IMG/VR virus record: IMGVR_UViG_3300045971_000344
Coordinates: 230,945 to 294,944 of that record
Strand: one strand, 5' to 3'
DNA: 64,000 nucleotides
This document shows positions 475 through 45,717 of this stretch, in pieces. The notes beneath the pieces were generated by a model. It saw nothing but the letters and a program-made list of their open reading frames with translations. It was not told the origin of the DNA and did no database searches. A program made the position numbers and the translations under genes. Positions within the stretch are counted from its first letter, which is position 1. Each line of letters opens with the position of its first letter.

Positions 475-1497
475 ATGAGATATGTAGCCATTTCAAGCGG
501 ACTAACGGATGAGATCAGAGGTTTGTTCTCAATAGCCGTTAAGGACGATAAACAACCGGGTGATATAAGGGAATGGGAAGATAGCCTAAAAGCACTTAAG
601 CCTAAGCTATATGAAGCATATAGATCAGCTATTACTAATAAGCTCATAGAGTGGCGTGTAGAGCTCGTACCTTACCATGGATTAGGTAGTCGTAGCTGGA
701 GCGTTAATTCCTACAGAGCTGGTCTTAAAGGTGATGACGCGGCGATCAAGCACCCCGCCCACGTTTTAAGAGAGACGAATTCTAAGACACAGGCCCAGAA
801 GGCAAAAGAAAAAATTGATGAATATAAATACACTAAGGTTTTATCAAGAGAACAGGGCTTCTATAAGCGCCTACGGTATCTGTATAAATTCAATTCCACT
901 AAATTGTCTGATTGGGACCGACAGTTTATTACCTCTTTGGGTAACCAATTGACCGAAGGTAGACCTAGTACATTGAAGCAAAAGCAAATAGCGAGTAAAT
1001 TATTTGAAAAATATAAAGTACCAGAAGGAGCAGAGGCAACTACTATGAGAAAGACTACTATAAGGCATACCAAATCTAATAAGTCCAAGACTACTGCTGT
1101 GGACATGGATACAGAGTACAAAATGCTTAAGGCTCTTAATAAGTTTGCTGGTAAAGACATTAGATTCAAGGACATGATTAAGCTCGAATTTAGGGGTGAA
1201 ACCGACCACATTGAGATTTTTAGTCACCCTTTGAATTTCAATGTCAGTATAAACACAAGCGAATTACTACATAAGTTTAAGGTTCACCCTGGTGCATTCT
1301 TGACCTTTTTGTACTATAACGGGGCTCAAAATAACGATCCTCAGAATTTAAAAGCTTATGTACCATATTCCTTTAGAAGGAAAGGCGTAAAAGCATTCAA
1401 AGGCCCTTCAAAATGGGTACATGATAGCGCTGGTTTTTGGAAGCAGATTCCTCTTAATCCAGAAGATGAGGATTTTGAAAGCATAGAAGTTGAATAA
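475..1497 (+). CDS. Leader-bearing hypothetical protein; probable fusion of two genes (internal start at 1045)
   Basis: N-term MRYVAISS; in-frame GAGG-N9-ATG at 1045 starts MRKTTIRH; C-half resembles 27515-27904. Confidence 0.75.
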   Translation: MRYVAISSGLTDEIRGLFSIAVKDDKQPGDIREWEDSLKALKPKLYEAYRSAITNKLIEWRVELVPYHGLGSRSWSVNSYRAGLKGDDAAIKHPAHVLRETNSKTQAQKAKEKIDEYKYTKVLSREQGFYKRLRYLYKFNSTKLSDWDRQFITSLGNQLTEGRPSTLKQKQIASKLFEKYKVPEGAEATTMRKTTIRHTKSNKSKTTAVDMDTEYKMLKALNKFAGKDIRFKDMIKLEFRGETDHIEIFSHPLNFNVSINTSELLHKFKVHPGAFLTFLYYNGAQNNDPQNLKAYVPYSFRRKGVKAFKGPSKWVHDSAGFWKQIPLNPEDEDFESIEVE

Positions 1498-1525
1498 CTA
1501 ATCTCTTAATGAAGGGAGTGTATAA

Positions 1526-1771
1526 ATGAGAAAGACCCTTGTTGTTAATATCCGCCAAAAAGAACAATCTTATGTAAATGAAATAGAGATAGAAAAGGCT
1601 GTAGAAAAGGCTAGAGAGGCCAAAGATTTTCGTCAAGAACTACTAAAATTAGATAGGATCTTTACGAAAAACCTAAACGAGTCAATTGGTAGTGACCGCT
1701 TTATCTATAAGAAGTATAGAGACAAGGTTAGAGGTCTTATGACGGTCCGTATGCCCGCTGGTTGGGACTGA
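1526..1771 (+). CDS. Hypothetical protein with leader-like N-terminus
   Basis: SD GGGAG; MRKTLVVNIR. Confidence 0.7.
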   Translation: MRKTLVVNIRQKEQSYVNEIEIEKAVEKAREAKDFRQELLKLDRIFTKNLNESIGSDRFIYKKYRDKVRGLMTVRMPAGWD

Positions 1772-1835
1772 TCACTAAAAATACAAGCATATCTAAGCAA
1801 ATCGTAATTTATTTATGATTGAGGAGGTTTGATCT

Positions 1836-2294
1836 ATGCGAAAGATAAGGGTTGCTATTGCATCCGTAAAGAACGAATTATCTTATCAGTGGTACAAAAT
1901 AAAGAGTCGGGTACAGCCCATGGAACTCCGAGGTAAAGAAGTACGACTCAATCAGGGTGATGTTATCGGTTTCCGTCCAGGTTCCAATGGAAAGACCACT
2001 CGCATGGTCCTCAAGGATAGCATCGGGTACGTTATGAGTCCTACCAAAGAACAGGTTGAGTATTTATTGAAGAAATGCGAGCCCTTAATTGGTGGCGCAA
2101 TAGACACAGCCAAGATAGGCTTAGTAACTGAACCTAAGGTTAGCGTTAAAGACAGGCGCATACTTGAAGAACTAAAGGACATGTCTAATATCTTGAAAAG
2201 GTATAAAGACATAACTGACATAAAGATCGAAAATAAACGTTTGCTATTTAGGTACGATAATCGTCCTTACAGTATTATTAGCGACCCTTCTTAA
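1836..2294 (+). CDS. Leader-bearing hypothetical protein
   Basis: SD GAGGAGG; MRKIRVAIAS. Confidence 0.8.
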   Translation: MRKIRVAIASVKNELSYQWYKIKSRVQPMELRGKEVRLNQGDVIGFRPGSNGKTTRMVLKDSIGYVMSPTKEQVEYLLKKCEPLIGGAIDTAKIGLVTEPKVSVKDRRILEELKDMSNILKRYKDITDIKIENKRLLFRYDNRPYSIISDPS

Positions 2295-2305
2295 AGGAGA
2301 AGTGT

Positions 2306-2857
2306 ATGAAGACCATTAGTGTAGAAATAAGTAGCGGAGATAACCAGTTAGTGTCCCAAGCAATACGGATCCTAACTAAGGTTGTTGACGCGGGTTTTAA
2401 GAAGAAAAAGGGTAAGGGCGCTACGGGGAAAAATACTGTACAAAAGGCCATAGAGAAATTCGTTAGAAGTCTTCCTGAAAAGGATCTTCAGGAATTGATA
2501 GAAAGTAAGTACGAAAATACGGAGACCTCTGAAGATAGATTACTCGCTTTGGCTTACAATATGAAGCAGCAGTCTACTAGGATGCCAAAAGAAAAGATAG
2601 CGGAACGGTCGGAACGCCATAAGGCAATGATAACAAAGCGTAAGAACAGAATAAAAGAACTTGAAATGAAGAAAAAGAACAGTACAAACCCAGATACTGT
2701 AAAGCGTATCTCACAGATTGTTACCAAGCATAAAGATCGTATTGACCGCCATAATGAAGCTCTTAAGTATTACAAAATGCTTGGGTCGTTAAAGCCCAAG
2801 ACGCATAAAGACATAGTTAAAAAGAAGACCAATCCAATGGGCCAGTCTACTAAATAA
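2306..2857 (+). CDS. Leader-bearing basic coiled-coil protein
   Basis: SD AAGGAG; MKTISVEISS; Lys-rich. Confidence 0.8.
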   Translation: MKTISVEISSGDNQLVSQAIRILTKVVDAGFKKKKGKGATGKNTVQKAIEKFVRSLPEKDLQELIESKYENTETSEDRLLALAYNMKQQSTRMPKEKIAERSERHKAMITKRKNRIKELEMKKKNSTNPDTVKRISQIVTKHKDRIDRHNEALKYYKMLGSLKPKTHKDIVKKKTNPMGQSTK

Positions 2858-2869
2858 GGATAAATAAAA

Positions 2870-3262
2870 ATGAGAAAAATCAGTGTCCGTATTGTCACAA
2901 CCGCGGCTGGCGCAGGAGAAGCATGGTGGAACAATCAGAGCAAAGAGCAGAAGGCGGCGTACATCAAAGCTCATCCAAATAGTAAGTATGCTAAACAAGC
3001 GGGAGCAGAAAAAGAGACTGTGGTAAACCAACATCCAAAGAAACTTATAACTGATTCTAAACTTAATAAGAAACAAGAAAAAATAAAGGAGCTTAACGTC
3101 CAGTTAAAAAATGAAAAGGAGACGTTAAAAAAGCTTACGAAACAACTACCAAAGTATAGATGGGGCTCATCCGCTAGTTTATGTAGATCAGAAATAGCCG
3201 ATATTAAAGAAAAGATACAAAAGATTGAAAAGCAACTACAAAAATATGAAGATAAAATCTAA
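2870..3262 (+). CDS. Leader + WW/HPNSKYAK module protein
   Basis: MRKISVRIVTTAA then WWNNQSKEQKAAYIKAHPNSKYAKQ. Confidence 0.8.
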   Translation: MRKISVRIVTTAAGAGEAWWNNQSKEQKAAYIKAHPNSKYAKQAGAEKETVVNQHPKKLITDSKLNKKQEKIKELNVQLKNEKETLKKLTKQLPKYRWGSSASLCRSEIADIKEKIQKIEKQLQKYEDKI

Positions 3263-3283
3263 CAAAAAAGAAATAAAGGAGAA

Positions 3284-3454: not shown

Positions 3455-3466
3455 AAGGGAGATGTT

Positions 3467-3952
3467 ATGAGAAGAATAATTGTAAAGATTGTAACAACTG
3501 CTTCTGGGGATGACTGGTGGAATAGTCAGAGCAAAGAGCAGAAAGCGGCTTACATAAAAGCCCATCCTAGAAGTAAGTACGCTAAACAAGCTGGTTCGGC
3601 TGCACCTAAAGCCACTAAAACAAAGACCGAAAAGGTAGAATCACTAAAAAATAAATTGGTAGTACATCATAAGCCATCAAAAAATTTAACGAAAGAGCAA
3701 ATTGAAGATAATAAAAGGTATAATAAGTTTAAAGATAAAGAGAATCTTAAAAAAGCGAAGCTTTTAGCTGAAGGTGCTGAAGAAAAAATTAAAGCCCTTA
3801 AGGCTAAACTTAAAAAAGAAAATGACGCTAGCATAAAAACGCGCATCCAAAAACAAATACAAAAGTTAGAGTCAGCTGTTCGTATAACGGCTATGTACTC
3901 TAGAGAAAAGGTTGACGGTTACTATAATTCAGACCGACATTATCAAAGTTAA
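3467..3952 (+). CDS. Leader + WW/HPRSKYAK module protein
   Basis: MRRIIVKIVTTAS then WWNSQSKEQKAAYIKAHPRSKYAKQ. Confidence 0.8.
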   Translation: MRRIIVKIVTTASGDDWWNSQSKEQKAAYIKAHPRSKYAKQAGSAAPKATKTKTEKVESLKNKLVVHHKPSKNLTKEQIEDNKRYNKFKDKENLKKAKLLAEGAEEKIKALKAKLKKENDASIKTRIQKQIQKLESAVRITAMYSREKVDGYYNSDRHYQS

Positions 3953-4006: not shown

Positions 4007-5197
4007 ATGAAGAAGATTAGCGTACGTATCAGCAGCATGAACAAGGCAACTGCAGCAAGAACTCGTATGAACTTTGAGAGCGAAGGTGATGAAGGCATGA
4101 GCTTCAGGGCGGCCAAGGGCGTCAATGATGAGCTGAACGTAGTTGAAGGCGATGTTATTTTTGATAGTGAGAACGGAATTAAATTCAAGCCTTCTCGGGC
4201 ATTCCGAAAAGAAGTACCTATGAAGACAGGTAATACGATTAAGGTAGAAAAGGATGCAGAAGGTGAGCTTACCTTTGAGTTCGAAGGTAATGATATTAAA
4301 TTTAAGCCTTCTCGCGCTCTTAAGAACAGCGTAATCCTTAAGAATAACAGTAAGATCAAAGTAGCAAAAGACAATCACGGCGATATCATCTTTGAAGGCA
4401 TTGACGGACTTGGATTCAAACCATCTAGCAAGATGAAGCGTATGCTCACAGCCTCGTCTGACTATACAGAGATTTCATCTGATAGTGGTGATGCATGGTG
4501 GGCGAAACAAAGCAAAGAGCAGAAAGCGGCTTATATAAAAGCCCACCCTAGAAGTAAGTACGCTAAACAATCAGGTGGACAAACTGCTCCAGCTAAAGAA
4601 AAGACAGGCGGGTCTAAGTCAACTAGCGCTCCAGAGCATTGGTTTAAGAATAAAGAAAAGCCTGGCACTAAAGAATATGACGATGCTATAATAGACGCTC
4701 TAAAGCAAAATAGTAAAGGATCTACATATGTAAATAAGAATGATAAACCTCTCTTTCTTAAGATAAAGAATCCTTCAGAAAGAGTACAAATGGAGGCAGT
4801 AAGAATTCAACCTTCTGTTTATGAGGCTATAAAAAATCCTAGTGAAAAAGTTTCTCTCTCTTACCTTAAATCTTTCCCTAGGGGAATAATGGATATAAAA
4901 AATCCTAGTGAAACTATGCTTAAAGTAGTTGAAAAGAAGGATCCCTTTTGGATAAAAGAACTGGAAAAGAAGAACGGTTCATCTAAAACAACCGTAGGTC
5001 CTAAAGATACTAACGGGCCTAAAGTAAAGGCTTTGAAAGAAAAGATTTCGGAGCTTACTGAAAAAATGAATAAGTGGAAAGAAAAATATAGGGCGTCTAA
5101 ATCAGCTACGGATAAGATAGTAGCAAAGACACACTATAAATCTACTAAAGCTGAACTGACTAAGGTTAATCGCGAGATCAGGAAGCTTTCTAAGTAA
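4007..5197 (+). CDS. Leader-bearing multidomain protein: HU-like FKPS repeats, WW/HPRSKYAK module, IKNPSE (DUF4116-like) repeats
   Basis: MKKISVRISS; KFKPSRAFRKEV, KFKPSRALKNSV, FKPSSKMKRML; internal TEISS; three IKNPSE repeats. Confidence 0.75.
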   Translation: MKKISVRISSMNKATAARTRMNFESEGDEGMSFRAAKGVNDELNVVEGDVIFDSENGIKFKPSRAFRKEVPMKTGNTIKVEKDAEGELTFEFEGNDIKFKPSRALKNSVILKNNSKIKVAKDNHGDIIFEGIDGLGFKPSSKMKRMLTASSDYTEISSDSGDAWWAKQSKEQKAAYIKAHPRSKYAKQSGGQTAPAKEKTGGSKSTSAPEHWFKNKEKPGTKEYDDAIIDALKQNSKGSTYVNKNDKPLFLKIKNPSERVQMEAVRIQPSVYEAIKNPSEKVSLSYLKSFPRGIMDIKNPSETMLKVVEKKDPFWIKELEKKNGSSKTTVGPKDTNGPKVKALKEKISELTEKMNKWKEKYRASKSATDKIVAKTHYKSTKAELTKVNREIRKLSK

Positions 5198-6415: not shown

Positions 6416-6652
6416 ATTAGATACACAACTATTGCTAAAACAACTAAGCGTGGTAATTTAGATTACGACCCTGAAGATATCCCTGAGTATAAGAAGGGTG
6501 CGGTCAAAGCAAAGGCCGATGGTATGTTTGTTATGTTTTATGATAAAAAGGGAAATGAACTGGGTAGAAAGAAAATAGGAAACGCTAATCAAGCACAAGA
6601 ATGCGCGGAATCAAATAATGTATTCTATAAGAAATATGGAGTTATGCTATGA
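6416..6652 (+). CDS. Unannotated 78-aa leader-bearing protein with ATT start
   Basis: Open frame fills the gap; GGTGA then ATT-AGA-TAC-ACA-ACT-ATT-GCT (xRYTTIAK); ends in ATGA overlap with 6649. Confidence 0.6.
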   Translation: MRYTTIAKTTKRGNLDYDPEDIPEYKKGAVKAKADGMFVMFYDKKGNELGRKKIGNANQAQECAESNNVFYKKYGVML

Positions 6653-7083
6653 GGTACGTTACCCTATCTGTATCTACTAATCCAAATAGACCTAAATTTG
6701 GGACCTGTATTACTAAAGGTAAATTATGTCTATGCTTTGAAAATGCTCGTTTAGAGTATTGGGCCCAAAAGGCTAAGGGTAATGATTGCAAGTACATAGT
6801 TGGACTTGTTTATGGTGTTCCAAAAGAATTTGAGAAGGAAAAACAAGATAGTAAACCCAGTGGTCTTTCTCACGCATGGGTAGAACTTGAAGATAATACA
6901 ATAGTGGACCCCACACCCTATGCAATAGGTAAGTGGGTTCAAAGTAGAGAAATAGAAAATAATACTGCTCCAAAAGAGTATGCACTTAAGTATTGGAGTA
7001 AAAAGCATCCTTTAGAATACAAGATAAATAAGGAAATAAAAGAATCAAAATTAAGGGCGGTACTAAAATACTTTCCTCTATAG
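6649..7083 (+). CDS. Leader-bearing protein with transglutaminase/papain-like Cys-His-Asp motifs
   Basis: MRYVTLSVS; CFENA...HAWVE...DPT. Confidence 0.6.
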   Translation: MRYVTLSVSTNPNRPKFGTCITKGKLCLCFENARLEYWAQKAKGNDCKYIVGLVYGVPKEFEKEKQDSKPSGLSHAWVELEDNTIVDPTPYAIGKWVQSREIENNTAPKEYALKYWSKKHPLEYKINKEIKESKLRAVLKYFPL

Positions 7084-7096: not shown

Positions 7097-7369
7097 ATGC
7101 AAGTAGATACTGAGAAAATGGTTCCCACCCAAATGAAGTCCAAGCTTAAGAAGAAGGGCTATTGGATCGTATCTTGTGAGTCCGCGGGTGGTGGTAACCG
7201 TGCCCACAGCTATTGGTTCGTCTATTGGAATGACCTAGACGACTCGGTCCACGTACAGACCGATGGTACCTTAGGTGGGGCGAGTAAGTCCTATAATAAG
7301 CAAAAGGCAATGGAAATCGCCATAACAAAAAGATATAAAGAACTTTATACGAAAGGACAATTGCTATGA
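7097..7369 (+). CDS. Hypothetical protein
   Basis: SD AGGA; ATGA overlap with next gene. Confidence 0.65.
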   Translation: MQVDTEKMVPTQMKSKLKKKGYWIVSCESAGGGNRAHSYWFVYWNDLDDSVHVQTDGTLGGASKSYNKQKAMEIAITKRYKELYTKGQLL

Positions 7370-7854
7370 AAAAGATAACGGTTAGAATCACCACCGCAAA
7401 GACCGATGAGCCTGTAGTAGAAAATCAATTTGCAGAGATCGTAAAAGAGATGCGGCAAATGCCTGCAGTTAAGAACAAAGAAGCCGTGTTGAAGAAGCGT
7501 AAAAACTGTATTCACCTGGAATATAAGGGCGCTAATTACTATATCGTACGCCATATCCATGAATTGAAGAAACTTAGAGAAGAGTCTTCTGAAACTCCAG
7601 GGGACTTAGACTTTATGGATTCTTATGGCTTTAAATACTATGGGTTAACTGAAGGTAACCACGTATTTTCTTATTCTAAATTCGTGCCATCTAAAGGTAT
7701 AACTTTTAGTTGTTCCGTTCGAGTAGCTAAAGATGGAACTTGGAGTGGTGGTGGGTCTGATGCTAAATTTCCTAAAAACAGAGGGTCTAACCTTTCTCAG
7801 TTAAAGACTTACGCTAATTCAGTTAAAAAGAAAATGAATTCCTTAGGTTCTTAA
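7366..7854 (+). CDS. Leader-bearing hypothetical protein
   Basis: MKKITVRITTAK. Confidence 0.8.
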   Translation: MKKITVRITTAKTDEPVVENQFAEIVKEMRQMPAVKNKEAVLKKRKNCIHLEYKGANYYIVRHIHELKKLREESSETPGDLDFMDSYGFKYYGLTEGNHVFSYSKFVPSKGITFSCSVRVAKDGTWSGGGSDAKFPKNRGSNLSQLKTYANSVKKKMNSLGS

Positions 7855-7881: not shown

Positions 7882-8253
7882 ATGGCAACAATTTGTGTTG
7901 ACTTTGATGGAACTGTAGTTACCCATGACTACCCAAGAGTAGGTAAAGATATAGGAGCGGTTCCTGTACTAAAAAGATTAGTCGAAGACGGGCATAGACT
8001 AATCTTATGGACAATGAGAGACAAAGCTGAGTTACAAGATGCAGTCAATTGGTTTTTTCAGAATAATATACCTCTTTGGGGTGTGAATGAGAACCCAGAA
8101 CAACATACTTGGACGGACAGTCCAAAGGCTTATGGCCAACATTATATAGACGATTGTGCGGTTGGCACTCCCTTAATTCATGGTGTACACAGTAGACCTT
8201 ATATTGATTGGGCACGTATGGAGCAATTATTGTTGGAGATGGGGGTACTATGA
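7882..8253 (+). CDS. Cap-less HAD-superfamily phosphatase (BT0820-like)
   Basis: ICVDFDGT motif I, LILWTMR motif II, SPK...YIDD motifs III/IV. Confidence 0.85.
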   Translation: MATICVDFDGTVVTHDYPRVGKDIGAVPVLKRLVEDGHRLILWTMRDKAELQDAVNWFFQNNIPLWGVNENPEQHTWTDSPKAYGQHYIDDCAVGTPLIHGVHSRPYIDWARMEQLLLEMGVL

Positions 8254-8453
8254 AGATCAAACGACTAAAAATAACAACTGCGGCTGATACAGATAAGCAT
8301 GACTACATAATTGCCGTAAAAGAGATGCTAGATAGCCATGATGAAAATGACCACAATAAGACACAGTTCGATAACTACTCTGATAAAGCGCGCCAATTAT
8401 TGGACAACAATAAAGATCGTGATAGAATGACAGTACTACTTTTATCTACCTGA
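8250..8453 (+). CDS. Leader-bearing small protein
   Basis: ATG at 8250 (ATGA overlap); MKIKRLKITTAA. Confidence 0.7.
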   Translation: MKIKRLKITTAADTDKHDYIIAVKEMLDSHDENDHNKTQFDNYSDKARQLLDNNKDRDRMTVLLLST

Positions 8454-10030: not shown

Positions 10031-10348
10031 ATGAAGATCAAAGGAATTACTATAGCTTCTTCTATAGATGACCGGCTGGAGACCATATTCAAGCAATTAG
10101 GTGCAAAGTACATGAACCATAACGGACAGTCAGTATTGGTCTTGAATACTACTCCAGACGTAATGGCACAAAAGGTTGAGATAGCGTATGAACAGTTGAG
10201 GAAACTGGGATATGATAATAAAAGCCAGTCCCAAAAGCATTTCTGGTATATAGTAGATGCTCAAAATGAATTACCTGAGGTTCAGATTGAGTCACAAGGT
10301 TCTGAGGGTTTTATCAAAGAAAAGCACAATTATACTATAACTTGGTAA
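10031..10348 (+). CDS. Leader-bearing hypothetical protein
   Basis: MKIKGITIASS. Confidence 0.75.
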   Translation: MKIKGITIASSIDDRLETIFKQLGAKYMNHNGQSVLVLNTTPDVMAQKVEIAYEQLRKLGYDNKSQSQKHFWYIVDAQNELPEVQIESQGSEGFIKEKHNYTITW

Positions 10349-10389: not shown

Positions 10390-10689
10390 ATGAGAACGAT
10401 AAGGGTAAGTATTGAGACCACCAAGACTACTGCGGCATCTCCGAAGGGAATTATCCAAGTATTCTTCTGTAATGGCTTGAATACTGCAATGGGTAAAGGC
10501 GTTATCTTTCCTACTAAGGCTGAGGCAGTTGAGTATGCTATTAGCAAGTTAAGAACAAGCAGTAATTTATTTAGTTCAAAAGTATGTTTAGATACAGTTG
10601 ACTCTAAAGGATGGACTTCACAAGAAACTCTCGCTGAGTTTGTAAAAAACAGCTCGGGTAAGGTTTGCAAATTAGTTCCAGTAAAATAA
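10390..10689 (+). CDS. Leader-bearing hypothetical protein
   Basis: SD GAGGAG; MRTIRVSIETT; C-term GKVCKLVPVK resembles 42325-42588. Confidence 0.75.
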   Translation: MRTIRVSIETTKTTAASPKGIIQVFFCNGLNTAMGKGVIFPTKAEAVEYAISKLRTSSNLFSSKVCLDTVDSKGWTSQETLAEFVKNSSGKVCKLVPVK

Positions 10690-36078: not shown

Positions 36079-36422
36079 ATGAAGAAGATTACTGTAAGAA
36101 TGACAGAAAAAAGCGCAATGATTAAAAAAGGTCTTCAAAAAAAGCAGCAGACTTTGCTGATTCTAATGTTTATAGCGTAGACTGCTGGGATGCTGTTACT
36201 AACAAAGCAATTAGAGAAGACTTGGAAACAAATGGCTCTTTTGAAGACGCAGAAAAAGAAGCTAGTAAGATTTATAAGAATGCAGTGGGCTACGCCGTTA
36301 TTAGGGAAGAAGAAAATACTGGAAAAGAAAGAAAGTACTCAGTTGTTAAGGGTAAGTTCACTAAGATGTCTAGCCTACGCTTACCTTATTTGTGGTTCAA
36401 AGCAGAAGAAGGTGGTAAGTAG
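36079..36422 (+). CDS. Leader-bearing gene that needs a -1 shift at A-AAA-AAG (programmed frameshift or pseudogene)
   Basis: SD AAGGAG; MKKITVRMTEKSA; 0 frame stops at 36180; -1 frame from 36141 is open to 36422. Confidence 0.6.
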
Positions 36423-36543: not shown

Positions 36544-38418
36544 ATGATTAAGCGCCGCATGCCTGGAAATAGTCCACTAAGTAGGACACACTCAGTAGAT
36601 AGTACAGCCCTTGGAGCGAAGGCAAACCCAAAGTTAAGAGTTAACGATAGTCAAGGTCGAATGGTTGAGACTTCTAATATTGGAGGGGGCGGACTACAGA
36701 ATACCTCCATGTCTAACAACCCAATATCCATTGACTTATTTCCTTTACTTAAAGGGATAGTACCGGATGGATTTGAAAACTATCCATTACTTAATGCTTT
36801 GTACCGTGATATTTTCTACTATGACTCTGTAGCAGGCTCTGCTACCGAGTTAATGTCGTTTATGCCCTTTTCAGATTTTACCTTGGGCGGAGTAGAATCA
36901 GCTGATAAGCCGAAGCTGAATAAGTTTTATGAATCCTTGGATAGGATTAATACACGCCGTTTATTACCTGAGTTATCCGTAGACTACTTAGTATTAGGTA
37001 CCTTCGTAGGTTCATTGATTTTCAATAAAAAGCAAGGTATCTTTACAGATGTTGTTCCTCAAGACATTGACCACATCTCTATGGTTCCCCTTCCCTTTTA
37101 TTCGCAAGACCCGATAATGAATGTAACGGTAGCAAAAGAAACTATCGCTGCCCTTTCAGGAAATTCTAAGCGCATAGAACGCGTTAAGAAAATGGTAGGC
37201 GAAGAAGTAATACAGAAGTTAACTAGTGGTAAATTTGAGCTCGATCCATTGACCACGCTTTATGTTCCACGCAAGACCCTATCTACTAGAGAAGGAATAT
37301 CTTGGTTTAAACGATTGCTTCCCATATACTTATTGGAGAAAAACCTGTTTAAGGGTACCATTATAGAAAGTGCTAAAAGACAGAGAAGCATAATGCACAT
37401 AATGGCTGGGTCTTCCGATTGGGAGCCAACTGTTAATGACCTACAGTTTCTTACTGAGCTGTTTATGAACGCTGACGCTGACCCTATTGGAGCAATGGTT
37501 GCTACCCGGCAAGACGTTCAGGTAAACGATATTCGCCAAGGTGGTGACTTTTGGAATATTACGCAGGTTTGGGCGGATACAGTACCGGCCAAATTAAGGG
37601 CTCTAGGTATTAGTGAAGGATTCTTAGGACAAGACGCCAACTACGCAGAAGCCCAAAACAGCTTGACTGTCTTTATAGAGTGGCTAGCAGCGTTCCGTTA
37701 TATGATTGAGCGCAAAGTATTTTACGATAAAATATTCCCGTTTATTAGTGTAGTAAACGGTTATTATAAAACAGAAAAAGACATGAAGAAATGGAAGAAC
37801 AGCGATCTAGATCCCGAAGATATTATGTACGAGCTTCAGGATAATAGCGCCCTCATGATTCCAAAAATTCATTGGCACAAACAGCTACAACCCGAAGGTG
37901 ACTCTGATTATTTGGGTATGTTAAATAGCTTGGCCGAGGCAGGCGTACCTGTTACCTTACGTTCACTTGCCGCAGCTGGTAACTTGAGCTTGGATCAGTT
38001 AATGTCTGAAATGGAAGAAGACCTGCGGTTGAGGAAGACGGTCCAAGAAATGAAGGCAAAATTAGAAGGCGGAGGAGGGGGCGGTGATGAAGGTGGATCT
38101 GGAGAAGAGTCTTTTGAAGAATCTTCTATAGGTGCAAATTTTAGTACCTTGGGTTCCCTTAGCCCGGACAATCCTTATATAAGTGCTGCCTTATCCAAGA
38201 CTAGGGCAAAGCACGGACCTCTTAAGAATATACTTCAGCGTTCCTATGGTTCCGATAGTGAGATCAAAGGTGTATCCAAGACAGGAAAAATGAAGTACGT
38301 CCATAATCAAAAAGAAGCTAATGACCGAATCAATACCTTCATCGCTCGCGCGGCCGTAGAAAAACATGGAGTAAAGAAAAATAGAAGAACATTCTTCCCT
38401 ACAATAAAATTAAGATAG
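36544..38418 (+). CDS. Probable portal protein
   Basis: 624 aa from ATG 36544 (purine-rich SD); helical core with LYRDIFYYDSVAGSATEL and KLRALGISEGFL; lies between terminase and protease. Confidence 0.65.
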   Translation: MIKRRMPGNSPLSRTHSVDSTALGAKANPKLRVNDSQGRMVETSNIGGGGLQNTSMSNNPISIDLFPLLKGIVPDGFENYPLLNALYRDIFYYDSVAGSATELMSFMPFSDFTLGGVESADKPKLNKFYESLDRINTRRLLPELSVDYLVLGTFVGSLIFNKKQGIFTDVVPQDIDHISMVPLPFYSQDPIMNVTVAKETIAALSGNSKRIERVKKMVGEEVIQKLTSGKFELDPLTTLYVPRKTLSTREGISWFKRLLPIYLLEKNLFKGTIIESAKRQRSIMHIMAGSSDWEPTVNDLQFLTELFMNADADPIGAMVATRQDVQVNDIRQGGDFWNITQVWADTVPAKLRALGISEGFLGQDANYAEAQNSLTVFIEWLAAFRYMIERKVFYDKIFPFISVVNGYYKTEKDMKKWKNSDLDPEDIMYELQDNSALMIPKIHWHKQLQPEGDSDYLGMLNSLAEAGVPVTLRSLAAAGNLSLDQLMSEMEEDLRLRKTVQEMKAKLEGGGGGGDEGGSGEESFEESSIGANFSTLGSLSPDNPYISAALSKTRAKHGPLKNILQRSYGSDSEIKGVSKTGKMKYVHNQKEANDRINTFIARAAVEKHGVKKNRRTFFPTIKLR

Positions 38419-38429: not shown

Positions 38430-38696
38430 ATGAGAAAAATTATTGTACGTTTCACTGAGACTGGTTCACTCAAAGAACAATCTTTTGCTACTCGTCCTAA
38501 ATTTTTAGAACGAGGGCAATCCGTAAACATAGTTGATCGACATGGAAAAGGAATGACTTGTGATGTATTACTTCGTGCTAGTACAGACGATGATGGGAAT
38601 TTACTTATGACAGTTACTCCAACTTCTCGTAAAGGTCCTTCCTTTTTGGTTGTATGGAATAGTCGTGAAGGTAAATGGATAGAGTTTGAGGACTAA
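38430..38696 (+). CDS. Leader-bearing hypothetical protein
   Basis: MRKIIVRFTETGS. Confidence 0.75.
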   Translation: MRKIIVRFTETGSLKEQSFATRPKFLERGQSVNIVDRHGKGMTCDVLLRASTDDDGNLLMTVTPTSRKGPSFLVVWNSREGKWIEFED

Positions 38697-39072: not shown

Positions 39073-39360
39073 ATGAGAAAAGTAATTATCGCAGGTATAG
39101 TACGCGCATCTCAGCAAATAACTCTTAAGGGAAACCGCTTAGTATTTCCTTCCGGTGAAGTTTCAAGTTTGCCAACTAAATATGATGAATTTTTAGTTGT
39201 GGGTAATAAACGTGGTGAGGAAGTAGCAATACAAAAACAGAAGAAGTATATTTACTTGGACTTTAATAAGTATGATGAGACTGTACCCGATGAAAAATCT
39301 CTAGTTGAATATTTAAATAAAAATGGTTATATTTATTTCATTGGTGTTGATGATAGATAA
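39073..39360 (+). CDS. Leader-bearing hypothetical protein
   Basis: MRKVIIAG. Confidence 0.75.
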   Translation: MRKVIIAGIVRASQQITLKGNRLVFPSGEVSSLPTKYDEFLVVGNKRGEEVAIQKQKKYIYLDFNKYDETVPDEKSLVEYLNKNGYIYFIGVDDR

Positions 39361-39380: not shown

Positions 39381-39767
39381 ATGAGAAAAGTCGTAATTGC
39401 GTCTACAGGAGAAAAAGTTACCTCCAAAGAGAGAAGGACCATAACAGACGGATTATACAAAGTTTCAAAGGTGAAATGGGAAAGCATTCCCTTAAGAGAA
39501 ATAAGACAGGCCTTTGCAGACGCGAATATGATCTTACTCCAAGAGGATGATACTCCATATAGCGGAATGTTCTTGGGTGAAAAAGGCAGGGCAAGAATAG
39601 CTTTTGGTCGTGCACCTGAAGAAATCTGTGAGCGCTCAGTGTACGGTAAGCTAACAACGGACCAGTCTAATACACGCTTTACCCCAATCAGTAATAGCCT
39701 GCTCATCCTTGAGTGGTATAAAGATCAGGGTATGACAAAGTCCGAAATTAATTGTTATATATCCTGA
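39381..39767 (+). CDS. Leader-bearing hypothetical protein
   Basis: MRKVVIAS. Confidence 0.75.
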   Translation: MRKVVIASTGEKVTSKERRTITDGLYKVSKVKWESIPLREIRQAFADANMILLQEDDTPYSGMFLGEKGRARIAFGRAPEEICERSVYGKLTTDQSNTRFTPISNSLLILEWYKDQGMTKSEINCYIS

Positions 39768-39778: not shown

Positions 39779-40180
39779 ATGAGATTCGTAGCGATAGCTA
39801 AAGATTTGTATAACACAAAAGACGTTTTAGCTATTCAAAATAAAGATAGACAGAAAAAACTTTCTTTAAGAACAATTTTTGACTTAGACGAGTCTAAGGC
39901 ATTGTTAGAAAGTAAGTGGGATCTTGTGGACATTCCTTTAGTTAAGATTAAAAAGGGTGTTTTTAGCTTTAACCCAGATTTTGAAATGCTTAGAGTTGGG
40001 TCTGTAGCGTACAAAGCAAATAAGAATGTTTACGACATAATTCTTGCATATAAAGCAAGGGCCAACGTCCCTCCTTTGTGGCTAGATTCGGATCTTAGCG
40101 TTCTAGATGGAAACCACCGAATGGCTGCTCTAGAGTTTTTAGGTATAAAGAAAATAAAAGCTTTTATTCCTGCATCATGA
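39779..40180 (+). CDS. Leader-bearing ParB/Srx-like domain protein
   Basis: MRFVAIAK; VPPLWL....VLDGNHRMAAL..LG. Confidence 0.75.
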   Translation: MRFVAIAKDLYNTKDVLAIQNKDRQKKLSLRTIFDLDESKALLESKWDLVDIPLVKIKKGVFSFNPDFEMLRVGSVAYKANKNVYDIILAYKARANVPPLWLDSDLSVLDGNHRMAALEFLGIKKIKAFIPAS

Positions 40181-40189: not shown

Positions 40190-40666
40190 ATGAGATTCGT
40201 AATTATTGCTGGTGAAGAAGACCACAAGGCAGCGCTTGAACGTACCGGCTTTTGGGGACAAGAAGCCGCTGGTTGCTTATTTTTGGCAAAAGACACTGGA
40301 CGTATTCTGTTTGCCCGAAGAAGCAAGAATGTATTGAGCCCAAATACTTATGGAACATGGGGTGGGGCTATAGACAGAGGAGAATCTCCAGAGAAGGCAG
40401 TTCGTAGAGAAGTAGAAGAAGAATCTGGATACGCTGGAACATTCGCTCTAAAGTTTCTTATACTGTTCAAACATTCATCTGGCTTTCAGTATTTTAACTA
40501 CCTTGCTATAGTTCCCACTGAGTTTGAACCCGAATTGGATTGGGAAACTTCTGGGTATAAGTGGGTAACTTTTGGGCAATGGCCACGACCTTTACACTCT
40601 GGGGTTAAATTTCTTTTGGCAAATGCTTCAAATAAAATAAAGAAATACGTAGATAAATACTCTTAG
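40190..40666 (+). CDS. Leader-bearing Nudix hydrolase
   Basis: MRFVIIAG; Nudix box GGAIDRGESPEKAVRREVEEESG. Confidence 0.9.
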   Translation: MRFVIIAGEEDHKAALERTGFWGQEAAGCLFLAKDTGRILFARRSKNVLSPNTYGTWGGAIDRGESPEKAVRREVEEESGYAGTFALKFLILFKHSSGFQYFNYLAIVPTEFEPELDWETSGYKWVTFGQWPRPLHSGVKFLLANASNKIKKYVDKYS

Positions 40667-40962: not shown

Positions 40963-42306
40963 ATGTTAATGTCTGAATTTATTTCTAAGTACAAAAAAGC
41001 AGGGCGTAAGAAAAGTTCTGCGCTTGAACTTATAAAGACAAAGACACGTTTGGTTGGTGAACGTTGGACAAATAAAAAGCAATTGCTGTTTGATAAAACG
41101 TGGGACGCTTTAGATAACGTTAGCCCTATTATAGTAGAGCATAAACCCGAGAAAAGGGATGAATTAGATCCTTTTGAAGAACGCTTTAAACTCATGGCAA
41201 AAGTGTTTAACAAAAGAGAGGCCTTAAAATTTTACCATGACCTTTGGGTTTATTATAATCACAAGCTATTCTCTAATAGGATGAAGGCTCCTGGATTTAA
41301 ATTTACTAGGGATAGTGGTCTTAAGTTGAACGTACGGGCATACTATTCCTCTAAAAATATAATAGCATTTAACAAAAGATTATTCTTCAACCCTTTCAGT
41401 ATGTTTTGTAACACCATGGTGCATGAAATGTGTCACCAAGCGGTGGCCGTATTGGATGGCAAGGTTAATATAAGAGAAGGTAAGAACAGGGTTATTCATG
41501 GAGACGACTGGAAGAAATGGATGCGTCACTGTGGACTAAACCCAGACCGCTGTACTAAGTCTGAATTAATGGATTACATGAATGAAGATGAAAAGGTTGA
41601 ACATAAAGAAAAGATAGAAGAGAGAAAAGCTCAAGTAGCATCTAAGGTTAAGTTACAGCCTGAGGGTCATACTATTGCTCAGACATGGTCTACTCAAAGG
41701 CATGAATGGATAAAAGGCTGGATTGTAATGCCTTTAGATAAAGGTAGAAAGAAATGGATGTTTATTGAAAAGCCCGAAGGGTTGGCTTACCTTATTGTAC
41801 CTGCAGAATCGTTTTTTGAGGTTCCTCTGGAGGAACAGAGAGCACTTGAGCTTAATACTATTCAGTGGAAACAGTATTCTAAGCATATAGAACAACAGTA
41901 TATCTCTGTTAAGTCCCGAAAGAAAGAACAAAACGCAGGTAAGAAACAATTTACCACTAATTACGCTAAATTATTACAAGAGCACTATAAGTTAATTCCA
42001 GGATCTAGGTTACAGAGCTTTGAGGTAATATTATACTTATTAGCTAGGTCTGAAATTGCAAGTAATGGGTATGGAACTTATAATATAACGCGCTTAAGCG
42101 CAGGTAGTAAATATCCTGTGTATATGGTTACAGATGCAGTAAATTGGTTGTGCCTTATGGATCCTCATAATGTGGAGACCGATGACACTGAAGAATTAGT
42201 TACCTTCATGAACAATTCCGGCTATGGTCAAAAAGGCTATACCATAGAGAATTTTTTATCTGCGGTAAGGAATTATTACTATAACGGTGAAGACGTATTT
42301 GCGTAG
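40963..42306 (+). CDS. SprT-like zinc metalloprotease
   Basis: YYNHKLF, TMVHEMCHQ, HGDDWKKWM. Confidence 0.8.
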   Translation: MLMSEFISKYKKAGRKKSSALELIKTKTRLVGERWTNKKQLLFDKTWDALDNVSPIIVEHKPEKRDELDPFEERFKLMAKVFNKREALKFYHDLWVYYNHKLFSNRMKAPGFKFTRDSGLKLNVRAYYSSKNIIAFNKRLFFNPFSMFCNTMVHEMCHQAVAVLDGKVNIREGKNRVIHGDDWKKWMRHCGLNPDRCTKSELMDYMNEDEKVEHKEKIEERKAQVASKVKLQPEGHTIAQTWSTQRHEWIKGWIVMPLDKGRKKWMFIEKPEGLAYLIVPAESFFEVPLEEQRALELNTIQWKQYSKHIEQQYISVKSRKKEQNAGKKQFTTNYAKLLQEHYKLIPGSRLQSFEVILYLLARSEIASNGYGTYNITRLSAGSKYPVYMVTDAVNWLCLMDPHNVETDDTEELVTFMNNSGYGQKGYTIENFLSAVRNYYYNGEDVFA

Positions 42307-42597: not shown

Positions 42598-43335
42598 ATG
42601 AAGATAAAAAGGGTAGGTATTTCCATACGCGAAGTAAGTCTGTATACTGAGACTTCAAGCTCAGACTTTAAAGACCTATCAGAGAAGGACCAGTTAAAGG
42701 AATTGAAGGTTAGCTCACCTCAAAAAGCACTGTCTTTATTTAAGACACTTAAGGCTCCTACGGACAAACAAATACAGATCGTACTTAAGAAGAACCCAAA
42801 GGTCTTGAAACACATAAAACCCCTGCCCAAGTATGTTGAATACGTCTTAGACGAAGACCCTTCTGCGCTAAATCTAATTCCTAAATCTAAGGTAACCGAT
42901 GACTTACTAATAAAGGCAATACGCCCTACCAAAAAAGTATTAGCTGGCCCTAAAGATATTGTGGCTCGAGAGACCTTGAAGAACGTAAGTAAGATAGATA
43001 AGGGAATAAAATTCAGCCCTCGGGCAATAAAAGAAATTAAAAAATTGATTAAAGGTATAAGTAATAGTGAAGTAAAAAGAGCAAATTCCTTACTATCTAA
43101 ACGAGGTATCACGGAGATAGAAATGTCTGCGAGTTCAATTGTTAGATCTAAGTATCCGCCTTATACTTTAACCGTTGCCTTTCCCGGGAATGAAGACACG
43201 AGGTATGAATACTATATAGGCTCTTGGCCGTTATTTAATAAAGCACTCTCCTTACAGAACAATCCTGGAGAGTTTAGCGCCTTTGTAAAACAACATGAAC
43301 TTGATTGTAAAAAATTTACGGTGGGTGTGTCATGA
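42598..43335 (+). CDS. Leader-bearing protein; C-terminal domain possibly KTSC-like
   Basis: MKIKRVGISIR..TETSS; internal IEMSAS then TLTVAF...YEY...F.......PGEF..FVK. Confidence 0.65.
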   Translation: MKIKRVGISIREVSLYTETSSSDFKDLSEKDQLKELKVSSPQKALSLFKTLKAPTDKQIQIVLKKNPKVLKHIKPLPKYVEYVLDEDPSALNLIPKSKVTDDLLIKAIRPTKKVLAGPKDIVARETLKNVSKIDKGIKFSPRAIKEIKKLIKGISNSEVKRANSLLSKRGITEIEMSASSIVRSKYPPYTLTVAFPGNEDTRYEYYIGSWPLFNKALSLQNNPGEFSAFVKQHELDCKKFTVGVS

Positions 43336-44444
43336 AATTATCTGAATTAGTAGTCCGATGGAAGACAAAGGGCATGACGCATCCTGAAGCTTTGTCTAAA
43401 GCAAAGGATAAGGTTAGAAAATTTGGTGAACGCTGGACAAAGAATAAGCAAGCGATCTTTGATACCTCTTGGAGTGAGGTTACTGAAAGTAAGCCCTCTA
43501 AGCAGCCTAGGTCGAGCATAAAGCCCACCACGGACGGTAAAATATCCAATATAGATGAAACAAAGACGCAAGGTGGTACTTATCCACAACGGATTAAGTT
43601 CTTTAATACTATACTTGCTCCATGTAAATTCCCAAAGTCAGATTGGTCTAAATTTGGGCTCCATGTTAGGGCGACTAATACAACTGAGCCCTCTAAAGAG
43701 CAGGCTTTGGCCTTAAAGCTCCTTAAACAGCACGGGTTTACTTACGCTCACAATATAAAGCCCAAGGTATTTCAAGAAGCTAGAGAGACACGAACAGTTG
43801 CCTGGTATAATGACCGTTATAACAACAGTATAAGCACAGTAGCCCAAAAGTCTAATAACGGTAAAGATGATTTCTTTATCCTTAATCTATCGTACCACAT
43901 GACACTCGCTGAAAAAGAAGCCCTTCAAGGTATGGAATGGCTAGAAGAAAAGAAGAAGGCGGCACAAGAGAAAATTGCAAATGGTGAGTTAAAACAGCAG
44001 AAGCGAAAAGAAGATTATCAGTTATCGTTCCATGATTACCTTAAGAACGCTAAGGGTACCCAGACAATACGAGTTGGCGTAAAGGAATTTGGACCCGAAG
44101 AATTAAAAGAACAATGGATAAACAAGGTAGAAGAGGCTATAAAGGATGGTCGTCAGGTACCTCAAGCTGTAAAGAGCGAGTACAACGTAATGACCAAAGC
44201 TGTTGGGTCCGTCTATAAGTTACCTGTACTTAATGGTAAAGATAAGACCGTAACTTTAGATGAAGAAAAATTGAATAAAATAATTCGTAATTTAAAGAAG
44301 AAGGGCGTTGTTGTAGTAAAATCAGATGATAAGACTGCTTTTACCTTATCTACTGAACAACTAATATCTTCAGTTCCCTGTGGACCAGCCTTACGGTCCG
44401 CACTTAAACTAAAGAAACTGTGGGCAATGAAAGGGAGATTGTAA
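43332..44444 (+). CDS. Hypothetical protein sharing an N-terminal module with the SprT-like protein
   Basis: KVRKFGERWTKNKQAIFDTSW vs KTRLVGERWTNKKQLLFDKTW. Confidence 0.7.
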   Translation: MKLSELVVRWKTKGMTHPEALSKAKDKVRKFGERWTKNKQAIFDTSWSEVTESKPSKQPRSSIKPTTDGKISNIDETKTQGGTYPQRIKFFNTILAPCKFPKSDWSKFGLHVRATNTTEPSKEQALALKLLKQHGFTYAHNIKPKVFQEARETRTVAWYNDRYNNSISTVAQKSNNGKDDFFILNLSYHMTLAEKEALQGMEWLEEKKKAAQEKIANGELKQQKRKEDYQLSFHDYLKNAKGTQTIRVGVKEFGPEELKEQWINKVEEAIKDGRQVPQAVKSEYNVMTKAVGSVYKLPVLNGKDKTVTLDEEKLNKIIRNLKKKGVVVVKSDDKTAFTLSTEQLISSVPCGPALRSALKLKKLWAMKGRL

Positions 44445-45187
44445 TGGATAACATTGGTCTGTATCATAAAGGACGCCAGGTTGTTTACGCGTCTGCACAC
44501 CGCTCTATGGCTCCCATAGACGCTCATAAAGAAAAGCTATCGGCTAACACTGCAATAGCTTCATCTATAACAGGTGAAAATGGCCACAGGCTGGATGCCG
44601 ACGCTTGGTTATCTGCTGCGTCTAAACACTATTGTCTATCCAGAGATATAAAGGACTACGTTATTGTTCCGGTACCAGCCATTATGTCGGATATACCTAA
44701 TACTAATGGGGTGGCGATGCCTCGTTCTGAGTTGTTAGAATTCAGACCTGATGAAGGTCGCCCTGCATACAAAACATGGAAGGGAAAACCCACTTTTAGA
44801 GAACATGATAACCAAGATATCGCCCGGGCAAAGGGTTTGATTTTGGATTGTTATGTTAGCCCTGTCCGTAACTATGGTAAAGGTTTGATTAAGGTTATGA
44901 TGCTAGCGGCCTACGATAGAACAAAAGACAGTGTACTGGCTAACAATATCCTTAACGGTAGTGAGAACGCATATAGTATGGGCGCATACTTCTCTGGGTA
45001 TAAGTGTTCGATCTGTGGTTCTGGTCGATGTAACCACACAGGTCCAAAAGAGGCCTTGAAGATTGACCCTGTATCCAAAACATTAGCCTATAGAAATATT
45101 TATGAGATCAGTGGCTTTGAGCTAAGTTCGGTTTCTTCGCCGGCCTACATAGTTGCCGTAAGTGACTATTTGCTCGGAGCACAGTAA
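44444..45187 (+). CDS. Prohead (capsid maturation) protease, HK97/herpes-like fold
   Basis: PNTNG, TWKGKPTFREH (His), YSMGA (Ser), CSICG, FELSSVSSPAY. Confidence 0.8.
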   Translation: MDNIGLYHKGRQVVYASAHRSMAPIDAHKEKLSANTAIASSITGENGHRLDADAWLSAASKHYCLSRDIKDYVIVPVPAIMSDIPNTNGVAMPRSELLEFRPDEGRPAYKTWKGKPTFREHDNQDIARAKGLILDCYVSPVRNYGKGLIKVMMLAAYDRTKDSVLANNILNGSENAYSMGAYFSGYKCSICGSGRCNHTGPKEALKIDPVSKTLAYRNIYEISGFELSSVSSPAYIVAVSDYLLGAQ

Positions 45188-45222
45188 ACGTTAAACTGTA
45201 AATATTATTGAAAGGAAGACGT

Positions 45223-45717
45223 ATGAGAACATTATTAGTTGAGGTCTCACAGATTGATAGACAAGCAGAGGCAGCGGCCAAACGTATAGCAAAGGCGTTG
45301 TCTATGGATTTAACCGAACCAGTAATATCCACATCTCTTGATGATATTTCATTCTTACGGGTCCAGATAAGAGATCTTCAGAGAAGAAACTTAGAGTTGA
45401 GTTTCTTGGTCTATAACCCAGGTTTTGATGTAGACGATGAAGTAGCTTATGAATTAAAATGGATAAAGGATTTCAGTTCACAGAACGGAGATCGCCTGAT
45501 TGTCCAAGCACGCTATTCGTATGAATTTTTTGAGCAAAAATATCATCCAGAGTTTGTTGTCAGAGTATGCGAATTTTTATGTAATGTTTATGTTGACAGG
45601 GACTTCAAACCTTTTGAACTTTGGGTAGCGTTAATAAAGACAAACGGAATTATAAATAAGGAAATAGTTAAATATTTTGGACCAATAGACGTACCAGAAA
45701 AAGGAATAATCGAATAG
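45223..45717 (+). CDS. Hypothetical protein with leader-like N-terminus
   Basis: SD AAGGA, ATG 45223; MRTLLVEVSQ. Confidence 0.7.
   Translation: MRTLLVEVSQIDRQAEAAAKRIAKALSMDLTEPVISTSLDDISFLRVQIRDLQRRNLELSFLVYNPGFDVDDEVAYELKWIKDFSSQNGDRLIVQARYSYEFFEQKYHPEFVVRVCEFLCNVYVDRDFKPFELWVALIKTNGIINKEIVKYFGPIDVPEKGIIE

Follow-up and report, generated by a model that had tools for sequence, protein, structure and literature searches.

A short basic leader peptide on otherwise unrelated genes of a PaBG-like jumbo phage, and its probable role in capsid targeting

Why should dozens of otherwise unrelated genes of one virus begin with nearly the same short peptide? The question is raised by the last 64 kb (nt 230945–294944, plus strand) of the 294,944 bp IMG/VR record IMGVR_UViG_3300045971_000344, which was judged complete. 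This 64 kb stretch is referred to as the window, and coordinates are given either as window positions, counted within the stretch, or as genome positions, counted within the whole record, for which 426 open reading frames (ORFs) were called greedily. An earlier note on this DNA had described a basic N-terminal leader on about 35 unrelated genes of the window, and proposed that it is a capsid-targeting tag of the kind known from phage T4, independent of it and much larger. The leader is indeed a real feature of this genome, and the comparisons described below make it probable that it represents a lineage-specific peptide directing proteins to the capsid (prohead).

The virus is a jumbo myovirus of the PaBG / Lu11 / Erwinia 'Alexandra' type. 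Its major capsid protein (MCP), portal and large terminase are homologous to those of PaBG (46%, 43% and 42% identity, respectively), which places it among the PaBG-like (Baikalvirus-type) jumbo phages, and the same sequence was found on contigs from two pond-metagenome runs. The window carries the terminase, the portal and a tail-fibre-like block, while its right end is a replication and DNA-modification block with genes for DNA polymerase A, RNase H, radical-SAM protein, GTP cyclohydrolase I and helicases.

Across the genome, 44 leader starts were curated. Aligned on their hydrophobic pair, they collapse into a single motif, basic-x-V-x-I-[A/S]-[S/T], which follows either directly upon the initial Met or upon Met and two further residues. 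The anchor position is Val in 36 of the 44, Ile lies two residues on in 31, and these are followed by Ala or Ser (29 of 44) and then Ser or Thr (24 of 44). This one motif comes in two lengths, with the Met and basic residues placed three positions upstream of the anchor (short class, e.g. MRKVVIAS) or five (long class, e.g. MKKITVRITT). The leader is 8–12 residues in length, basic, amphipathic and strand-prone, and is usually followed by a short run of small or acidic residues. The mean net charge over the first ten residues is +1.8, compared to +0.7 for all genes, and a Shine-Dalgarno-like motif precedes 42 of the 44 starts.

All 26 of the starts listed in the earlier note are present in the sequence, each scoring at least 7 bits with a profile built from the leaders. 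One of them, at window 36079, opens an ORF of 33 codons, with continuation in another frame after A-runs. The figure of about 35 genes describes a real set, but the window itself holds only about 26 firm and 6–8 weak carriers; the set is larger genome-wide and extends outside the window (genome 121–138 kb on the minus strand, 228–231 kb, and a few scattered genes). The enrichment that the note had asked for was recovered both with a profile and with a regular expression. The latter matched 28 first-start N-termini, against a mean of 1.8 and a maximum of 7 in 1000 shuffles of residues 2–12, so that the motif is far rarer in shuffled N-termini. It matched 34 of 426 N-termini versus 5 of 1325 internal Met positions (Fisher p 8e-17), and 28 of the 94 genes of two genome regions versus 6 of 332 elsewhere (p 6e-15). 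In a six-frame scan, matches with long downstream ORFs were confined almost entirely to gene starts in these regions (genome 121–138 kb, minus strand, and 228–276 kb, plus strand, the latter being the part within the window), both of which are co-oriented with, and adjoin, tail, baseplate, portal and terminase genes.

The conservation lies at the level of the peptide, as had been claimed. For Lys, Ile, Val, Thr, Ser and Ala, codon choice within leaders is that of the rest of the genome, and only Arg shows a mild excess of AGA. Upstream of the leader starts there is no common k-mer, nor anything else in common except the ribosome-binding site. Genome-like codon use and unrelated upstream DNA rule out a nucleotide-level element and, because diverged orthologues also keep the pattern, indicate that it is the leader peptide upon which selection acts.

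These orthologues come from fragments of four relatives: G004 (MCP 88% identical), L036 and L043 (portal 71–73% identical), and L070. With the portal alone as query no close relatives were found, and it took an alignment with PaBG to do so. All four retain leaders, on orthologues as well as on other genes, and at about 30–57% protein identity the pattern is kept while the residues drift (MKIKGITIASS vs MKIKKIIIAN; MRKIRVAIAS vs ..CKVQIEISA). A profile hidden Markov model (HMM) built from the 44 leaders and used with a cut-off of ≥8 bits matched 36 of 409 N-termini of this genome, a count that includes the training set, and 6 of 37 in the independent L036 and L043 fragments. The corresponding figures were 0 of 462 for outgroup PaBG-like loci and 1 of 1039 for internal Met positions. 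No leader occurs in the 100 kb of PaBG that were inspected, and 19 further PaBG-like loci gave 0–1 chance matches per ~30 genes, ruling out the leader as a trait of all PaBG-like phages. Since it is present in the clade fragments and not in the outgroup loci, it is an innovation of one sub-clade; it is not general to N-termini, to host translation or to the wider phage group.

Beyond the tag, the carriers are mostly unrelated, much as first proposed. When the first 16 residues were trimmed, BLASTP linked only a few small paralogue groups, namely three paralogues of 350–410 aa, the genes at window 2870, 3467 and 4007 (sharing a 'WW..SKEQK..YI..HP' module), and two or three pairs. Most carriers belong to no Pfam or PHROG family; those with domains differ from one another, and each domain begins well after the tag (topoisomerase IB from residue 99, NUDIX from residue 25, and DUF4116). 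Outside the window, tagged ADP-ribosyltransferases of the ART-PolyVal family occur at genome 137232–138236 and, as a split gene, at genome 134317–134888. This repertoire of ADP-ribosyltransferases, topoisomerase IB and NUDIX proteins is of the injected-effector or polyvalent type. In the DUF4116 family, five relatives retain MKITRLKV.. and an acidic linker of variable length, while two begin directly at the conserved body; with the leader present or absent and the linker variable, the tag is therefore a modular appendage. The payload of another tagged gene, at genome 125265 (minus strand), is the C-terminal part of a G004 head-module protein that has a different, helical N-terminal module.

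The strongest indication of what such an appendage may do comes from a 410-aa protein (genome 126857–128089) with two paralogues in this genome and 118 database homologues. The family has a conserved start, '(A)R(R/K)NPEQNPK..', followed by '..DVYISFT.IDKIGINPKS', and it is the peptide ahead of this start that varies by lineage. In at least 54 of the 118 homologues it is a peptide of 10–13 residues ending in Glu (MKRFKEFIAE, MKKFTEFITE, MKTFKQFIKE). The capsid-targeting sequence (CTS) of T4 internal proteins, defined experimentally, is MKTYQEFIAE (PMC8442874), in which targeting depends on residues 4 and 7, and processing on residues 8 and 10 (PMC9026906). MKRFKEFIAE matches it at 7 of 10 positions, including 4, 7, 8 and 10, and the contig from which it derives is T4-like (gp32, late-transcription coactivator, UvsX, Rad50-like and DnaB-like genes). 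Another T4-like contig, with genes for sheath, gp19-type tube, gp15 and gp32, encodes two family members and an unrelated neighbour that all begin MLSYKE[YF]L.E, as would be expected of a capsid-targeting sequence. In the clade studied here, the same position is occupied by the leader (with a slash at the junction, MKITNVEISA/R.., MRKTTIAA/RRNPE, MRKVSIAA/RKNP, MRKVILAS/RSNP and MRIKTVSLTTAS/RRNPE). A second exchange is seen in the ART-PolyVal family, where MRKVVLSSIS/SSATKIWYQG (genome 134317–134888) corresponds to MNFITYIYE/SSANNIWYHG on contig L071, which has a faint match to a T4 neck protein; the two are colinear thereafter. In both families, then, the leader holds the cargo position of a T4-type CTS. 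It lacks the T4-type sequence itself (aromatic residues at 4 and 7, Ile or Leu at 8, Glu at 10), and peptides of that type were present only on homologues from T4-like contigs. An 18 kb Logan contig, L069, carries three large proteins (551–603 aa) that begin MKY[IV]YVP[LI]..A, one of them in the 410-aa family, and this peptide is a candidate for a third N-terminal code of this lineage-bound kind.

When the 410-aa protein was modelled with AlphaFold2 from an alignment of 61 sequences (mean pLDDT 80), residues 1–21 came out devoid of secondary structure, with pLDDT of 52 for residues 1–10 and 69 for residues 11–20, as against >90 in the core, so the leader is predicted to be an unstructured extension outside the modelled fold. 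The only PDB match of the model to stand out was a chain of the cyanophage A4 pre-ejectosome (Foldseek E 7e-3, probability 1.0), which VIA-align scored at Z 7.7 over 163 residues, versus 4.3 for the next match. The A4 pre-ejectosome is stored inside the capsid (PMC12002296).

Some tags end in a possible processing site. The pattern E↓T-[S/T/G]-[S/A/G/N/M], with the arrow at the putative cut, was counted 7 times within the N-terminal 25 residues of the 44 carriers, compared to 0.34 expected (p 7e-8), and sites of this E↓T-S type always lie just after the leader (..RFTE↓TSA, ..RIIE↓TSS, ..AAAE↓TSS). The same context is found 43 residues into the portal (GRMVE↓TSN; GRMVETSS in L036). These sites would be consistent with maturation of some of the carriers by a protease specific for Glu. 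As a prohead protease, the 246-aa neighbour of the MCP is not supported, since it resembles a decoration or cement protein, and the conserved 290-aa protein at window 10706 gave no lead. Neither propeptides nor a protease are discussed in the PaBG paper.

Beside the MCP lies an acidic protein of 613 aa (genome 191777–193618, minus strand), of which 32% is Asp plus Glu. It includes a polyacidic repeat of ~230 residues made up of GDELDEDEE-like units, and in PaBG the homologue bears the annotation 'ATPase'. The protein is a plausible candidate for a core or scaffold protein and an electrostatic partner of the basic tags. A complex prediction with a 20-residue leader, the MCP and both ordered parts of the 613-aa protein returned a score of 0.00, which speaks neither for nor against this. 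As a separate observation, the head-gene cluster contains a ferritin-like protein (genome 193757–194305, minus strand; PF00210, E 2e-16) with a 33-residue N-terminal extension, and this recalls ferritin-like encapsulin cargo.

Taken together, the leader is best regarded as a probable capsid-targeting peptide of this lineage. It would be appended to diverse enzymes and uncharacterised proteins, and during head assembly might bind a component of the prohead core, for which the acidic 613-aa protein is a candidate. Tagged proteins would thereby be enclosed in the head and later enter the host with the DNA; in a subset of tags, those ending in E↓T-S-S, a maturation protease specific for Glu may remove the tag. 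That the leader would work as the T4 tag does is suggested by positional equivalence, modularity and type of cargo; prohead binding, packaging, cleavage and injection of the tagged proteins are what we infer from these.

Several observations weigh against this interpretation. The structural match to an ejection protein is a modest one, based on a model, although it points the same way. The cleavage motif is not uniform, since sites of the E↓T-S type occur in only ~7–9 tags and most leaders have no Glu. In T4 the tag is removed at (L/I)-x-E by a gp21-type (Peptidase S77) prohead protease. Here, a prohead protease was not detected with the Pfam families S77 (PF03420), S78 (PF04586), S78_2 (PF14550), ClpP (PF00574) and S49 (PF01343), the match to PF03420 being at chance level (11 bits); with no protease found and most leaders devoid of Glu, the tag may be retained. 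The MCP, the portal and the decoration-like protein, all bona fide head proteins, carry no tag, and a few HMM or regular expression matches fall in the early region (43642, 54385), though these may be false positives. The ART-PolyVal database search by itself gave no clear swap, which was seen only on contig L071. Cultured relatives were not found, either as a DNA match in the phage collection or by tblastn with the cargo family.

The undetected protease and irregular cleavage site would also suit a tag that serves for docking or handover outside the capsid, for example a DnaK-type chaperone-binding element, or a strand that joins tagged proteins in an intracellular assembly. The basic, V-x-I composition, with a hydrophobic core between basic flanks, is like that of DnaK-binding elements, and among the phage genes is one for a J-domain protein (genome 14856–15479; PF00226, E 1e-20) that could recruit host DnaK. 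Such a role is unlikely, as it explains neither why a canonical CTS occupies the same position in T4-like homologues nor why the tag-rich regions are the structural ones. It is also partly compatible with capsid targeting, since chaperone binding might be a step toward packaging.

A favoured N-terminal coding sequence or peptide that aids translation initiation or early elongation would account for Lys or Arg at position 2, the mild AGA excess, and the strict placement of the motif at starts with good Shine-Dalgarno motifs. The other codons for leader residues (Lys, Ile, Val, Thr, Ser, Ala) are nevertheless those of the genome at large, the highly expressed structural genes (MCP, sheath, portal) lack the leader, and none was found in 462 genes of related phages. 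A stretch of 8–12 residues with position-specific Val and Ile, interchangeable with a T4-type targeting peptide of very different sequence, also fits poorly with expression, and this explanation is distinctly improbable. There is little chance, too, of a signal for degradation or timing, in which an N-terminal degron for a host or phage protease would limit the lifetime of toxic effectors. The leader is short and predicted to be exposed and unstructured, and many carriers (ADP-ribosyltransferases, topoisomerase) are potentially toxic, but no similarity to known N-degron classes was seen among those that could be tested, small proteins that do not look toxic are tagged as well, and the swap with capsid-targeting sequences would be unexplained. 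Common ancestry, with only the first strand of one ancient family conserved, or a DNA-level recombination cassette, is the least probable of all. Tandem paralogues do exist (2870/3467/4007 and the three genes of 350–410 aa), and the neighbours at window 35540 and 36079 have 21 of their first 22 bases in common. Against this, the Pfam domains differ (topoisomerase IB, NUDIX, ART, DUF4116) and begin 25–100 residues after the tag, the leader is predicted to lie outside the modelled fold, upstream DNA and codons are not conserved, and homologues elsewhere have no tag or other tags.

The tagged genes of the window are all on the plus strand. The leftmost is a 340-aa gene of the short class (MRYVAISS; window 475–1497; HMM 7.5 bits), the leader of which is kept in the G004 and L070 orthologues. 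It is followed by genes of 152 aa (MRKIRVAIAS; window 1836–2294; 13.7 bits), with a weak match to KMPT-N (PF20294, E 7e-4, below cut-off), and 183 aa (MKTISVEISS; window 2306–2857; 13.8 bits). In the 130-aa product of window 2870–3262, the leader is followed by the WW..SKEQK..YI module and a coiled-coil tail, with a weak Phage_scaffold match; its 161-aa tagged paralogue (window 3467–3952) has a WW module 89% identical to it, and next to this is a 396-aa gene with MKKISVRISS and DUF4116-like repeats (window 4007–5197). Further along are genes of 144 aa (MRYVTLSVS; window 6649–7083; 9.2 bits), 162 aa, with the near-consensus leader MKKITVRITTAK (window 7366–7854; 15.8 bits), and 67 aa (MKIKRLKITTAA; window 8250–8453; 13.4 bits), the last starting at an internal ATG of ORF 8208. 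The topoisomerase IB (window 8467–9783; PF01028, E 9e-27) has an N-terminal extension of ~98 aa with a degenerate leader (..KRYRVHIRTTAK), and its orthologues in G004 and L036 begin MKIIQVKYISLAS and MRIIKIKLATLAK, respectively. Next come genes of 105 aa (MKIKGITIASS; window 10031–10348), the G004 orthologue of which is 58% identical and retains MKIKKIIIAN, and 99 aa (MRTIRVSIETT; window 10390–10689; 12.0 bits). In full, the module 'WW..(Q/L)(S/T)KEQK..YI..HP.SK' stands directly after the leader in several proteins (window 2870–3262, 3467–3952 and 8467–9783), among them the topoisomerase IB and its orthologues in G004, L036 and L070, and is internal in that of window 4007–5197. A 289-aa protein nearby (window 12777–13646) starts MAYHKLQVTISAAGG, a leader-like core after four different first residues; its G004 counterpart has MRTLTVYIKP.

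To the left of the terminase are a 545-aa DUF4116 protein (PF13475; window 24590–26227), with MKITKVTIAS and an acidic linker, and genes of 129 aa (MKIVKVEISH..VE↓TS, an E-T-S motif; window 27515–27904; 16.7 bits), 245 aa (MKIVRIALNTAAS, orthologues MKINKIKIVKASS; window 27920–28657) and 301 aa (MDIRTIEISS; window 28659–29564; 12.6 bits). A CorA-like Mg2+ transporter gene is also located in this late region (window 26239–27246; PF01544, E 3e-42). The large terminase is an untagged landmark (window 29585–31708, plus strand; 42% identity to PaBG gp108), as is the portal (window 36544–38418, plus strand; 43% identity to the PaBG portal), with GRMVE↓TSN in its N-region. Between them are genes of 165 aa (MRKVIIAG; window 33271–33768; 8.8 bits), with a Shine-Dalgarno motif ahead of this ATG, and three with E-T-S motifs, of 242 aa (MRKITVRFTE↓TSA; window 33775–34503), 94 aa (MKKLVVRIIE↓TSS; window 35236–35520) and 168 aa (MKKITVRFVS..AAE↓TSS; window 35540–36046). 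The small tagged gene at window 36079–36422 changes frame after A-runs (leader ORF 36079–36180, continuation in another frame to 36422), and the sequence of the frame change is identical in contigs of the two pond-metagenome runs. The portal can be rejected as a carrier, as comparison with L036 sets its start at 36544, without a tag, and the ORF at 36079 belongs to a small broken gene of its own. A second frame-interrupted tagged gene, at genome 134317–134888 (minus strand), likewise breaks shortly after the leader, and the frame changes in the two could be due to slippage or decay. Beyond the portal lie genes of 88 aa (MRKIIVRFTE↓TGS, an E↓T-type site; window 38430–38696), 95 aa (MRKVIIAG; window 39073–39360; 8.4 bits), 128 aa (MRKVVIAS; window 39381–39767; 12.0 bits) and 133 aa (MRFVAIAK; window 39779–40180; 7.5 bits), a 158-aa NUDIX hydrolase with MRFVIIAG (window 40190–40666; PF00293, E 4e-14, residues 25–131), the fold of which begins near residue 25, and a 245-aa gene with MKIKRVGISI..YTE↓TSS (window 42598–43335), the leader of which is kept in L036 and L043.

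Six otherwise different proteins are headed instead by a helical-looking N-terminal module of ~50 residues, 'MKLSE...KG.S..EAL...GERWT..KQ..FD..W', recognised with jackhmmer (window 34–468, 40963–42306 and 43332–44444; genome 78730–80709, 194305–194730 on the minus strand, and 224819–225394). Its carriers include SprT-like and topoisomerase-like proteins, and it was found only in this clade, with none in the outgroup loci. In the SprT-like protein (PF10263; window 40963–42306, plus strand) it stands in place of the leader, and it also begins a 370-aa protein (window 43332–44444, plus strand). The G004 head-module protein mentioned above also begins with this module, which might serve as another address comparable to the leader.

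Directly after the tagged block is a gene for a 2035-aa protein with a SNF2-type helicase core (window 45728–51835), which has no leader and recalls P1 DarB and other large anti-restriction proteins that are packaged. Among the replication genes, the radical-SAM protein and GTP cyclohydrolase I (window 55348–56046 and 58079–58786) suggest a 7-deazaguanine-type DNA modification pathway. A helicase gene appears to be split into a ResIII/DEAD part (window 59366–60508) and a Helicase_C part (window 61667–62617), between which a minus-strand gene (window 60485–61561) encoding TnsA-like endonuclease and zinc-finger domains lies in a low-GC (31%) stretch; this insertion is probably a mobile endonuclease.

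If the leader is a capsid-targeting peptide, the injected proteome of this clade can be read from its genome: about 45 mostly uncharacterised proteins would reach the host at time zero, providing a ready list of candidate takeover and anti-defence effectors. A preloaded arsenal of ~45 injected proteins would exceed the ~50-protein head of SPN3US only if most tagged proteins are packaged. A distant jumbo-phage lineage would have reinvented the T4 principle or replaced it, using different chemistry, and cargo families would move between lineages via tag swapping. There would also be a purely genomic route to the capsid-targeting codes of uncultured phages, and foreign proteins could perhaps be loaded into phage heads by means of a new short tag. 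At least three codes appear to precede the start of the 410-aa family, namely the T4 type, MKY[IV]YVP[LI]..A in L069 and the basic V-x-I-[A/S]-[S/T]. We tentatively suggest, as a broader and rather doubtful generalisation, that tailed phages have lineage-specific N-terminal 'capsid zip codes', readable from genomes via one cargo family; in this clade about one tenth of genes would be tagged, with a second, helical module in addition, and perhaps without a gp21-type protease, by way of a polyacidic core protein.

No description of this leader was found in the literature, but several known systems resemble it in part. Sec, Tat and lipoprotein signals have a hydrophobic core of ~10 or more residues after a basic N-region, with a twin-Arg or lipobox; the leader is not of this type, having only alternating Val/Ile within five residues, followed by polar residues. 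Encapsulin cargo-loading peptides are short and extended, as the leader is, and bring diverse cargo into an HK97-fold shell, and a ferritin-like gene is present in the head module here. They are usually C-terminal, however, make direct contact with the shell protein and function in cells, not in virions, whereas the tag here is N-terminal. The Pfam families ART-PolyVal and KMPT-N stem from the polyvalent proteins of phages and conjugative elements, which are predicted to accompany the DNA into the recipient. The present repertoire of ART-PolyVal, SprT-like, KMPT-N-like and SNF2 helicase proteins is similar, except that the domains are mostly separate small proteins with one tag each and not parts of one giant polypeptide.

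Closer parallels are found among phage heads. In phiKZ and SPN3US, also jumbo phages, many internal head proteins bear propeptides, mostly of more than 100 residues, which are thought to target the prohead and are cut after Glu at the motif A/S/G-x-E (PMC5694885). These have only the cleavage motif in common, in contrast to the short common leader of 8–16 residues with a consensus seen here, and the leaders do not belong to this class. In P1, the N-terminal signal of the large anti-restriction protein DarB is sufficient for head incorporation; its first 30 residues suffice, DarB enters the capsid last in the ordered incorporation of Dar proteins, and the signal has so far been shown for one protein (PMC9024508). 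A giant 2035-aa SNF2-type protein adjoins the tagged block in the present genome, but is itself untagged, and the consensus motif seen here recurs on dozens of proteins.

The most similar system is that of T4, in which a CTS is carried by IPI–III and Alt (Mullaney and Black 1996, reviewed in PMC9026906). As in T4, a peptide of ~10 aa is found at the N-termini of unrelated proteins of one phage (44 carriers here), is modular, and occupies the same position on homologous cargo; ADP-ribosyltransferases are among the cargo, and in a subset a Glu-containing site lies where T4 is processed. The leader differs in being basic and strand-prone, V-x-I-[A/S]-[S/T], where that of T4 (MK.Y..FI.E) is aromatic and acidic, in that most tags have no Glu and an S77 (gp21-type) protease was not detected by Pfam search, and in belonging to a PaBG-like jumbo group outside the T4-like phages. 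The proposal of a T4-like tag is supported by the position of the leader in two cargo families, its predicted lack of structure and the effector-type payloads, while packaging, cleavage and injection would follow by analogy. The description as much larger holds, with about 45 carriers as against the few shown for T4 (IPI–III, Alt). The system is independent in so far as the sequence of the tag differs from that of T4; its cargo families, on the other hand, are shared with T4-like phages, so that the arrangement looks like the replacement of a tag on shared cargo and not a wholly separate invention.

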